Assembly (NCBI RefSeq): GCF_001194135.2
Contig: NC_068982.1
Coordinates: forward strand, 122,043,169 to 122,083,950
Direction: 5' to 3'
DNA length: 40,782 nt
Origin: Octopus bimaculoides
Lineage: Eukaryota
Shown one piece after another: positions 28,401 through 31,400 of the stretch; the first letter of the stretch is position 1, and each line of letters begins with the position of its first letter. A program made the position numbers and the translations under genes. The notes under the pieces were generated by a model. The model had not been told where the DNA came from. It made no database searches and saw nothing but the letters and a program-made list of their open reading frames with translations.

Positions 28401-31400
28401 GCCACCTCATCCCATGTTTTCATGCTCCACCACCTCATCGTAAAATTATATAAAGTGTGATATCATAGTATACAATAAGAAAACAGATCTTTAAGACAAT
28501 CTCCTTAATTTGAAATCCAATTATAATCATACACTATTCTGCTCAAACAAAGAAGACCACAGAGACAGTGTGGATTTATGAAGAGTGTTGTAAATCAATG
28601 TATCATTACCTTCTCATGAATAAATAACCAGCTTTACTGACTAAGTTGACATTCGGTGGTATATATGGCATTTCTACCATTGGTTCAGGTTGATATAAAT
28701 GATGACTTTGATTTTCTAGAGTGTCAATGAGTTCAATTGTTTTCTGGGTATCTTGACCTAATTCTTGTTGAACACTGAAAATAATAATAAATAAATAAAT
28801 AGAATTCTATATTTAAGAGATGAGGAATTATGTACATTATTTACATTCGACGGATATTTGTCCTCATCTTGTTTGTTGTTAACACAACGTTTCGGCTGAT
28901 ATACTCCTCAGCCTTCTTCAGGTGTCTTGGGGAAATTTCGAACCTGGGTTCTCATTCCTAAGGTATTCTTCGATGTTGTTATTATTATGGCGTAGTGGTT
29001 AAGAGCGCGGGCTACTAACCCCAACATTCCGAGTTCGATTCCAAGCAGTGACCTGAACAATAATAATAATAATAATAACAACAACAAGTTCAAAGAATAC
29101 CTTAGGAATGAGAACCCAGGTTCGAAATTTCCCCAAGACACCTGATGAAGGCTGGAGGGTATATCAGTGGAAACGTTGTGTTAACAACAAACAAGATGAG
29201 GACAAATATCCGTCGAATGTAAATAATGTAAATAAATAAATAGAAATACATTAATTTATTTAGAGGCAAAAACTGAAAAATTTTAGCTTAGAATTCACAT
29301 GATTAAATAAATTGATTTGATTTCTTTGATTAAGCACAATGTTTTTTTTATGTCATGTGAAGAGAATATAACGTATTCATAAAATATAAATTATATGTAC
29401 GTTATATGTAATTTAATATATTATTAGTACATTGTTAGTGAATGTATGAGCCAATGAGGAAGCTTTTTCAGACCAGTTAAAAAAAGTAGACAAATCTTAA
29501 AACCACACCCTACAGTAATTTTTTAGTTTAAAAAAAACCCCCACACATTTGATAAAGTAATCCAAGATATACTATGTCTGAGTAAAAAATTTAGTAATCA
29601 AGGGTAACTTTAGAGCTGTTCAGTCATGGATGGTCTGAGGTTGAACAGCAATTAGTTCCATATTTTATTGACTTTTGTAGAATGAAAAACAAATTAAACT
29701 TCAACAGACTTTTATTAATGTCTTAGCAAATTATAACTTAAAATTCTATCCACCAATACTGTGCCTACACAGATATACAAAAACACATGCATACATGTTT
29801 CTTCTTCTTCTTCATTGTCACCACGGCGTTGGCATCATTTGATATCCATAGTGCCCCTGGACTGGCTTGTGCGGGTGGCACATAAAAGACACCATTTCGA
29901 GTGTGGCCGTTTTCGTGCGGGTGACACGTAAAAAGCACCCACTACACTCTCTGAGTGGTTGGCGTTAGGAAGGGCATCCAGCTGTAGAAACTCTGCCAAA
30001 TCAGACTGGAGCCTGGTGTTGCCATCCGGTTTCACCAGTCCTCAGTCAAATCGTCCAACCCATGCTAGCATGGAAAGCGGACGTTAAACGATGATGATGA
30101 TGATGATGATGTATGGGATGGAAAATCTGACAGGAGCTGAAAAACCAGAGGACTGCTCCAAGCTCCAGTGTCTGCTTTGGCATGGTTTCTACGGCTGGAC
30201 ACCTTTCCTAACACCAACCATTTTAGAGTGTATTGGGTGCATTTTATGTGGCACTAGTGAGGTTATCAAAGAACTCACAAGACATGACTCCTTAAATTAA
30301 GGTGAGTGAAGTACTATATATATATATTTATATTCACATCACCTTAAAAAACATGAAATTTGATTTCATGTCACAAAGGGTTTTCAATTAGTATAATATT
30401 AATGTCTTTTACACCAGAAAAGAACAACAAACTTTTACAAGTAATTATTGTAAAAATACATGTTAACATCTTCATTAAATGATGAATGTAATGAATTATT
30501 ATGTCAACTTCTTTTCCATTCTATTTCTTTTTTTTAGTTTCTTTGTCTAATGTCGCTGTTTAGCTTCAAGTTAGCTGTGACTAAGCACATCTACCATGTC
30601 CAACTCAGCCTTCTCTTGAGACAAGATGAACATGGCTAGACTGTATCTTTATCTTTTCACATCTATAAGCCATAATTTGAAAAAAACTTTGTTGTTTCTA
30701 GCAGGTCAAGCACTCACTTAGAGGCTTAGTTGGCTAGTTTCTTTACCATAATTATTAAACTTTGTGTTTACATTTGCAATCATAAAATATGACTTTTGTT
30801 TAAAACTTCTACTTTTTTATTTTGAATTCTGAAAATTCTGAAAAGGAGGGAAGGAATAAAATAAATTGGAACAGTCCCAGCACATGTATGAGTAAAAATC
30901 AAACCTAGCAGTATTTGAGCTCAAAAGTGGTTTGAATGTTTAGAATGTTTAATAAGTTTGGTTTAGTTAAGATAGCTTTTTTTCTTTTACATTACAAATT
31001 CTGTTTAAGCAAAGATTTTGATTTAAAATATGAAAAATATTAATTTTGAGAGTGTAGCAGAGCACATGCTGAGTTTTGAACCAAATTTTCCAAGTCCAGA
31101 ACTACAACCTAACTTATCTCCACAAAAGGAAAAGTGTCACCATAAAAGCTAGTAACTCCTATGTAAATATGGCTTGACCAATCAGGATTGGCTAACTTAT
31201 GTTTGATGCAGCTAACTTCAAAGGAAGTATGTAATTTTTCCACCAGATAGTTTAGCCAAAGATTCTAGAAGGATAGCTTAGTTATAAAAGCTGGAAAATT
31301 TAACCTCAAACCAGACAGGGGAATCTATGTAACTTGTTTTAACAAGTTGGTCTCTCTCTCTCTCTCTTCCCATGTTTTACTTTTCTCGTGTAACAGGCTT

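Follow-up and report, generated by a model that had tools for sequence, protein, structure and literature searches.

The stretch of DNA analysed in this study, referred to below as the window, comprises 40,782 nucleotides of the Octopus bimaculoides genome (NCBI RefSeq assembly GCF_001194135.2, contig NC_068982.1, positions 122,043,169 to 122,083,950 of the forward strand; coordinates are those of the window unless a contig is named). It carries two copies, designated A and B, of a short repeat in which a tRNA-like head with RNA polymerase III (Pol III) promoter boxes is followed by a linker and by a 3' module containing a minimal hammerhead ribozyme motif, each copy being inserted as a long palindrome. 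Relatives of the repeat were found in Logan contigs and in three contigs (L006, L007 and L008) that all belong to the ENA assembly ERZ21867824 (invertebrate), abbreviated here to ERZ. The repeat probably represents a family of non-autonomous retroelements resembling short interspersed elements (SINEs) and dependent on Penelope-like elements (PLEs), in which a tRNA-derived head is connected through an (AAT)n(AAC)n linker to a 3' module with a PLE-type hammerhead and a terminal hairpin.

Organisation of copy A

Copy A is a 424-bp insertion at 28805-29228, enclosed by exact 17-bp direct repeats. Two inverted arms of 161 nt, at 28828-28988 and 29075-29235, are 93% complementary and flank an 86-nt spacer, and the whole insert, folded as RNA, forms a single hairpin of -273.6 kcal/mol. 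The sequence features described in the original prediction for this locus were all located, at most a few bases from where they had been placed. The direct repeat, given there as 10-17 bp, is a 17/17 match, its 7-nt overlap with the right arm explaining the range, and the hammerhead described as intact on the minus strand is so, with the plus-strand copy broken as had been implied. The features of copy A are as follows.

28788-28804: left target-site duplication TAAATAAATAAATAGAA, in a (TAAA)n-like target, 17/17 identical to 29229-29245.
28805-28828, minus strand: tail (sense ATTCCTCATCTCTTAAATATAGAA), present at one end only and homologous to the tails of copy B and ERZ.
28828-28988, minus strand: left arm, an inverted unit 5'-truncated within the linker, comprising the 3' module plus some of the linker.
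28881-28926, minus strand: minimal type I hammerhead of the left arm, intact.
28988-29056, plus strand: tRNA-like Pol III head, with box A at 28988-28998 and box B at 29032-29042.
about 29057-29087, plus strand: linker (AAT)6(AAC)3, the 3' part of which falls within the inverted repeat.
29075-29235, plus strand: right arm, the 3' module of the full-length plus-strand unit, with a tail-less end inside the 3' hairpin loop.
29137-29182, plus strand: hammerhead motif of the right arm, disabled by a G-G mismatch at 10.1-11.1 (CAGCC to CAGUG), z = 0.24.
29229-29245: right target-site duplication, its first 7 nt overlapping the end of the right arm (microhomology TAAATAA).

A second copy and the repeat family

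Comparison of the window with itself revealed copy B at 39133-39623, in which head, linker and 3' module meet at the same junctions. Its features are as follows.

39119-39132: left target-site duplication CATTCAACAGACTA, 14 bp, identical to 39624-39637.
39133-39355, minus strand: left arm, a tail-less inverted unit 5'-truncated in the tRNA-like head near the anticodon region.
39183-39227, minus strand: hammerhead motif of the left arm, with core defects (CUGAUGA to CUGAUA by deletion of one G; G12 to A).
39356-39599, plus strand: full-length unit of head (box A at 39363), linker and 3' module.
39503-39544, plus strand: hammerhead motif of the right arm, with core and helix II intact and helix I left at 3 bp by a 5-nt deletion.
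39599-39622, plus strand: tail, carried by the full-length unit and confined to the right end.
39624-39637: right target-site duplication.

The unit is about 265 bp long and non-coding, with a 3' module of about 170 nt. The full-length arms of the two copies start no more than about 10 nt apart, just upstream of box A, and the tail-less arms both stop at the same sequence, ...AATGTAAATA(A). The inverted arm is truncated within the linker in copy A and in the tRNA-like head, to about 39355, in copy B; the 24-nt tail sits on the truncated inverted arm in copy A and on the full-length arm in copy B. The flanking repeats are unequal in length (17 bp and 14 bp, respectively), and partial sense tandems of the kind known as pseudo-LTRs (long terminal repeats) are absent from both copies.

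The junctions shared by copies A and B indicate that the composite of tRNA head, linker and 3' module, as originally proposed, is an amplified unit and not a nested insertion or a one-off rearrangement. Because the second copy is built alike, the palindrome is likewise a property of the family. Kimura two-parameter distances between arms are lower within a copy (0.067-0.071) than across copies (0.087-0.090), which fits both arms having been laid down at insertion and then having decayed neutrally. Both copies are fossils, roughly 7-9% diverged and neutral, and nothing points to a host function. That the palindrome was created during assembly or amplification is scarcely credible: the window does contain N gaps and palindromes are a known type of chimera, yet the arms differ at 7% of positions and the same structure occurs at two loci and in the assembly of another organism.

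The tRNA-like head

Box A of copy A (TGGCGTAGTGG) is an exact fit to TRGCNNAGTGG, and box B (AGTTCGATTCC), 44 nt downstream of box A, fits its consensus at 10 of 11 positions. Within the window, a pair of A and B boxes spaced by 25-50 nt was found at copy A and copy B (39363-39416) only, and no such pair occurred in 300 random 40-kb sequences with the dinucleotide frequencies of the window. The D-arm and anticodon region may resemble those of tRNA-Ser. The consensus unit is free of TTTT runs, which is compatible with Pol III transcription and weakly suggestive of it.

A second box-B-like motif stands 10-25 nt upstream of the hammerhead in all lineages (octopus GGTTCGAAAT; ERZ GTTCGAAGTTCC, where it is duplicated), at 29116-29133 in the window, at about 395-410 on the minus strand of the Logan contig L004 and at about 3885-3915 on the minus strand of L006. 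Either a leftover from some other tRNA-derived segment or a functional role could account for it.

The hammerhead motif

The intact motif at 28881-28926 (minus strand) reads GACAC CUGAAGA A GGCUGA-GGAGUAUA-UCAGCC GAA ACGU U GUGUU. It is made up of a 5-bp helix I, CUGAAGA followed by an extra A, a 6-bp helix II with an 8-nt loop, and the GAAA core; positions 15.2 and 16.2 form a C-G pair, and the cleavage triplet GUU (G16.2 U16.1 U17) after helix III fits NUH, with cleavage predicted after GAAACGUU. The motif and its helix I are thus as first described, and helix II is one pair longer than the 5 bp assigned to it. This site is the sole match in the window, on both strands, to a minimal-hammerhead descriptor written for this study, which had no match in 400 random 40-kb sequences. 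When the 46-mer is folded on its own, its minimum-free-energy structure is made up of helices I and II (-14.3 kcal/mol, z = -3.4), and none of 200 shuffled sequences folded as well.

Four traits of the minimal hammerheads of PLEs emerged outside the search descriptor in the survey of Cervera and de la Pena (PMC4209133). These are an additional nucleotide that separates position 9 from 10.1, pairing of G10.1 with C11.1, a palindromic 15.2/16.2 that lacks loop 3, and a short helix I. All four are present in the octopus motif and in the intact ERZ motifs, which agrees with the assignment of the motif to the PLE type in the original prediction. The consensus of the four octopus arms is itself an intact hammerhead. 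Rfam, suggested as a check on the motif, returned no hammerhead match in the window at its gathering thresholds or even at E<=10, and it also missed the intact relatives in L006 at E<=1; its hammerhead models therefore appear blind to the type with a loopless helix III.

In the aligned set of 18 modules, 78.8% of the cells for the hammerhead helices are paired, compared with 11-44% when the partners are slid by 1-3 columns. A look for covariation in the stems, as had been suggested, gave one compensatory pair in helix II, 10.4-11.4, which is U-A in octopods and C-G in ERZ, with a half-changed C-A in some ERZ copies; the signal is weak when set against shuffles. Mean column conservation is 0.91 in the core, 0.87 in the stems, 0.60 in the upstream flank and 0.92 in the 45 nt downstream. 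The excess conservation expected of the core consequently exists relative to the upstream flank and not relative to the downstream one, and the conserved block consists of the hammerhead together with the sequence that follows it, the core not being singled out.

With a loopless helix III, the hammerhead would need a second copy, paired to it by way of the ACGU palindrome, in order to act; this intermolecular helix would be only 4 bp long and would form a pseudoknot in a cofold. The octopus hammerheads are either mutated or locked in a 161-bp duplex and hence are probably inert at these loci. The most fitting view of the motif here is that of an inheritance from a PLE pseudo-LTR that belongs to a recognition module, rather than of an active processor.

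The tail and the conserved 3' hairpin

The one-sided tail was found to be the 3' strand of a conserved stem, pairing with the internal AGATGAGG (AGATGARG). The resulting hairpin, with an 8-bp stem and a loop of about 39 nt, lies downstream of the hammerhead and an A-rich block. The stem is 100% paired in the 7 tailed units and shows two compensatory pairs, one changing G-C to A-U between the taxa and the other G-C to C-G in one ERZ unit, and RNAalifold independently predicts exactly this helix. Alignment shows the tails of octopus and ERZ to be homologous; they measure 24 nt in the octopus copies and 35 nt in L007. In both taxa the tail-less arms end within the hairpin loop, and in the tandem arrays of ERZ helix I of the next hammerhead starts within a few bases after the tail. 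No poly(A) is present at the 3' end of the unit.

Tandem AATGTAAAT 9-mers are found near the 3' end, with two units in each window copy (29210-29235 and 39575-39599) and three in L004 (about 282-320, minus strand). This variation in copy number resembles the reverse-transcriptase slippage of repeat-tailed retroelements.

Relatives outside the window

The relatives were reached by a profile-free protein search with an antisense open reading frame (ORF) of the module, which led to four spurious ORFs whose contigs were then fetched. The Logan contigs L004 and L005, from runs whose accessions lie in the range to which the run of the related-species contig L003 also belongs, hold a module that is 85% identical, 5'-truncated and headless, with a degenerate hammerhead; L004 is taken to be from another octopod, and no sense ORF was found upstream of its copy. 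All three ERZ contigs contain a homologue of the module with 77-80% identity over 88 nt (E about 1e-14); its partner there is another tRNA-like head (box B CAGGTTCAATCCT), and the fused units measure about 290 bp. Intact minimal hammerheads are found at L006 3815-3856 and at L008 5808-5849 and 5937-5978.

Inverted pairs also occur in ERZ, as at L006 9041-9299 (minus strand) with 10248-10546 (plus strand). The most complete case is L007 10000-10588, an entire insertion between 15-bp flanking repeats; its left side bears a 35-nt tail plus two hammerhead modules that are inverted and 5'-truncated, its right side a tail-less full-length unit, and the join lies about 25 nt upstream of the hammerhead. 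This is the architecture of octopus copy A, found independently. As for target sites among these few insertions, copy A lies in (TAAA)n, copy B and L007 10000-10588 lie in unique sequence, and (TA)n borders two ERZ copies. Partial tandems in sense orientation, with a period of 126 nt and a hammerhead in each unit, are present on the minus strand at L006 3501-3960, L008 5756-6167 and L007 10032-10264. These units are retrozyme-like yet shorter than known retrozymes of 170-400 nt.

Other searches yielded little. Conserved 22-28-mers had no match in viral, JGI metagenome and GTDB collections, all of them devoid of cephalopod DNA; a 74-aa ORF that spans the unit, used as a protein query, retrieved a single Metaclust fragment, and an exact look-up of nine window ORFs in a protein collection gave none.

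Long inverted arms between direct repeats are also what a foldback or MITE-type (miniature inverted-repeat transposable element) DNA transposon with long terminal inverted repeats would display, and this origin must be considered very unlikely. The flanking repeats vary in length (17, 14 and about 15 bp), the one-sided tail makes the two ends unlike, the point where the inverted arm stops on its inner side changes from copy to copy, and the ribozyme-hairpin module of the arms occurs elsewhere in sense tandem arrays.

Insertion style and the probable dependence on Penelope-like elements

Insertions of PLEs are 5'-truncated, often with an adjacent inverted 5'-truncated copy and with a 30-40-bp tail at one end (PMC8557442, Craig et al.), and such tails and tandem or inverted structures are not observed in LINE-type (long interspersed element) insertion (PMC8557442). 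An inverted 5'-truncated copy abuts a full-length copy in A, B and L007 10000-10588, with truncation points that differ, and the one-sided tail completes the match to the PLE-typical inverted insertion claimed at the outset. In O. vulgaris, 30 Penelope families with 329 recent insertions have been recorded (PMC13282606). Taken together, the insertion layout, the hammerhead traits and the PLE activity in O. vulgaris lead us to read the element as copied by a PLE enzyme.

A rather unlikely account of the same features is an ordinary LINE-dependent tRNA SINE, in which the module would be a LINE-derived tail with a hammerhead-like motif and the inverted pairs would come from twin priming or adjacent insertions. 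A tRNA-like head, a body and two to three tandem AATGTAAAT 9-mers are what some stringent LINE/SINE tails show, ORFs of RTE-type LINEs lie near the ERZ copies, and no PLE partner was found in the window or the ERZ loci. Classical twin priming, however, inverts a more 5' segment of one RNA, and here both arms hold the same 3' module with their 3' ends outward. Adjacent insertions fit poorly with a single pair of flanking repeats that encloses the whole pair in three independent insertions (A, B and L007), and priming from the RNA 3' end would not yield an arm 3'-truncated at the same place each time. Moreover, nothing else in about 84 kb of octopod DNA is similar to the module, the motif of which has all the PLE-specific hammerhead traits.

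Alternatively, the copies might be 5'-truncated fragments of autonomous PLEs (pseudo-LTR or 3' untranslated region), the "tRNA head" being part of the PLE and no separate SINE existing. Most dispersed minimal hammerheads, including opposite-strand pairs, have been ascribed to truncated PLEs (PMC4209133), and the L004 copy is indeed 5'-truncated and headless. This explanation is nonetheless unlikely, given that the full-length arms have nearly the same 5' end, a short way upstream of box A and thus at the place expected for Pol III initiation, that the ERZ family has independently joined the module to a different tRNA-like head, and that no coding sequence lies upstream of any copy.

Several results weigh against the dependence of a tRNA-headed family on PLEs. 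No element with a reverse transcriptase (RT) and a GIY-YIG endonuclease that shares the module was found in the window or in about 50 kb of ERZ loci: window ORFs of at least 70 aa have no Pfam reverse transcriptase or endonuclease match, and the ERZ loci gave RTE-type LINE ORFs only. The head is not recognised as a tRNA (no gene by ARAGORN, no match to the Rfam tRNA model at E<=10), and acceptor-stem complementarity was not seen by eye. Only two octopus copies were found, both in the window, and no copy is present in two 20-kb loci of O. vulgaris (40 kb, reached through a repeat-derived protein). Of the four octopus hammerheads, three are disabled by mutation; covariation within the hammerhead is a single event between lineages, the observed values being reached by 23/500 and 105/500 shuffles; the core is conserved no better than the 45 nt downstream; and the tandem 9-mers near the 3' end recall the tails of some LINE-dependent SINEs.

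For the PLE-dependent family that is nevertheless favoured here, the following course of insertion is proposed. The unit would be transcribed from its own internal Pol III promoter, and its 3' module (hammerhead plus hairpin, conserved in two taxa) would be recognised in trans by the RT/GIY-YIG endonuclease of a PLE. The endonuclease would make nicks staggered by 14-17 bp, of which the flanking repeats of variable length are the observed part. Reverse transcription would be primed from both target strands, on two template copies, giving two cDNAs that have their 3' ends outward and meet 5' to 5' at a truncation point that varies; the joins observed fall in the linker (A), in the tRNA head (B) and upstream of the hammerhead (L007). 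One arm would begin at the true RNA 3' end and so have the tail, the other beginning inside the hairpin loop; the arm that starts there has 2-7 nt of microhomology to the target. From the architecture we infer, in line with the original prediction, that the element borrows a PLE RT; Pol III transcription, recognition of the 3' block by that RT, two-template priming on both target strands and any role of hammerhead dimerisation are likewise inferred.

A more far-reaching version is doubtful and is offered tentatively. The repeat may be a true SINE of PLEs, that is, a Pol III-driven, tRNA-headed family whose build is conserved across distant invertebrates and whose block of hammerhead and 3' hairpin is the handle for the PLE RT/GIY-YIG protein. 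Two template RNAs, perhaps held together by the palindromic ACGU helix III, would then be used at both nicked strands, the RNA 3' end serving as the start of one cDNA and a site within the hairpin loop as that of the other.

Comparison with known systems

The octopus motif shares with the minimal hammerheads of PLE pseudo-LTRs the type I topology, the lack of loop 3, the palindromic 15.2/16.2 and a helix I of 3-5 bp (PMC4209133), as well as the opposite-strand pairs a few hundred bp apart and the expectation of activity only as dimers. Such "dual min-HHRs", 100-700 bp apart on opposite strands, had already been reported (PMC4209133). The octopus motif differs in its helix II of 6 bp, compared with 7-8 bp in the Schistosoma families, and in its association with a tRNA-like Pol III head and, downstream, a conserved hairpin, with no RT ORF attached.

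The Schistosoma elements Sm-alpha and Sj-alpha, invoked as a precedent in the original prediction, are likewise short non-coding retroelements with a Pol III promoter and a type I hammerhead, as reviewed (PMC6765202), and to that extent the precedent holds. According to the reviews, however, the hammerhead of Sm-alpha is canonical, cleaves efficiently with the help of loop-loop contacts and often occurs in sense tandem (PMC6765202), whereas the octopus element has a loopless minimal motif and dispersed head-to-head inverted insertions with a one-sided tail, so that the two differ in motif class and insertion layout.

Non-LTR retrozymes of animals (PMC7229834; 10.64898/2026.07.22.740005) are also non-autonomous, hammerhead-bearing and proposed to be PLE-dependent, and the 126-nt sense tandem arrays of ERZ, with a hammerhead in each unit, are similar to them. 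The octopus copies, by contrast, are not sense tandems, so that unit-length excision and circularisation from them are impossible, and retrozymes have not been described with tRNA-type heads. The retrozyme half of the hybrid first proposed is not supported for the octopus copies: there is one hammerhead per strand of an insertion, and the long hairpin would sequester the motif.

Derivatives of Chlamys elements in Chlamydomonas, such as MRC1, are short and non-coding and insert in PLE style with pseudo-LTRs and multicopy insertions (PMC8557442). A 3' end in common with autonomous PLEs is established for them and not for the octopus element; they belong to the green lineage, the hammerhead is absent from most of them, and a Pol III head has not been described.

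Cephalopod SINEs dependent on LINEs, as generally described, resemble the element in having a tRNA-derived head with A and B boxes, a length of 200-300 bp and target-site duplications. The octopus SINEs OK, OR1 and OR2 of Ohshima & Okada (1994) are reportedly LINE-dependent tRNA SINEs, and the same is said of Ceph-SINEs. By their descriptions such elements are simple monomers with LINE-type tails, and a hammerhead, inverted pairs and a one-sided tail are not features of the class.

Each ingredient of the element therefore has a precedent, in PLE minimal hammerheads, in the Pol III-driven SINE-like hammerhead elements of Schistosoma, in PLE-derived retrozymes and in Chlamys elements. A search of the literature, with Repbase and Dfam outside its scope, found no published PLE-dependent tRNA SINE and no cephalopod hammerhead element, the author of the original prediction having likewise known of none from cephalopods. 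Nor did it find a tRNA-headed element with a PLE-type minimal hammerhead, or a tail that forms one half of a conserved hairpin.

Genomic surroundings

A likely coding exon at 32020-32265 (minus strand) has a weak match to BAR_3 (E 6.7e-5, below the Pfam cut-off) and is conserved at 86% and 100% amino acid identity in two short Logan contigs, one of them from a related octopod. Its presence places the hammerhead elements in or beside a minus-strand BAR-domain gene. The search with the exon peptide for an orthologous empty site reached short Logan contigs only, and L003, which spans window positions 30505-33188, ends before the element.

The abundant repeats of the window recur in O. vulgaris loci at 74-91% identity. 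A separate tRNA-derived SINE at 37780-38150 (box A at 37792; GGCCCAGTGGTTAGGG...GGTTTTGATTCCC) is unrelated to the hammerhead element and 91% identical to positions 11655-12024 of the O. vulgaris contig L002. A repeat family of about 290 bp has at least nine copies in 40 kb (2610-2899, 24716-24947, 26193-26468, 27909-28099, 29850-30110, 19123-19324, 10418-10490 and others), and its spurious ORFs match the O. vulgaris "hypothetical predicted proteins" P0002 and P0003, so that these annotated proteins are probably repeat-derived. A second family of about 200 bp (25730-26670, 27480-27708, 14282-14408 and 17740-17910), partly arranged head-to-tail at 25.7-26.7 kb, is also present in the O. vulgaris contigs L001 and L002 at 74-87% identity. 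Assembly gaps at about 18.85-19.05 kb and 22.35-22.9 kb, amounting to 736 N in all and flanked by (TA)n- and (TATAC)-type microsatellites, indicate a gapped scaffold assembly.

Significance

SINEs are in practice defined by their dependence on LINEs, and a tRNA-headed family with Penelope-type insertion hallmarks would provide a clear case of partnership of another kind. If the more far-reaching version above is true, the relationships between SINEs and their partners reach beyond LINEs, and the family would be a small, tractable template for the unexplained insertion mechanism of PLEs. For work on that mechanism it offers a hammerhead, an 8-bp hairpin that includes the tail strand, and a reproducible truncation of one arm in the hairpin loop.

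Octopus genomes consist of SINE sequence to about 11.6%, and 893 recently active families are "unclassified" (PMC13282606); some of the latter may belong to the hammerhead-SINE family. An unusually high load of double-stranded RNA and supply of ADAR substrates have been reported for octopus (PMC5625713), and the perfect 160-bp intronic hairpins created by such insertions, if the more far-reaching version is true, would add to both.

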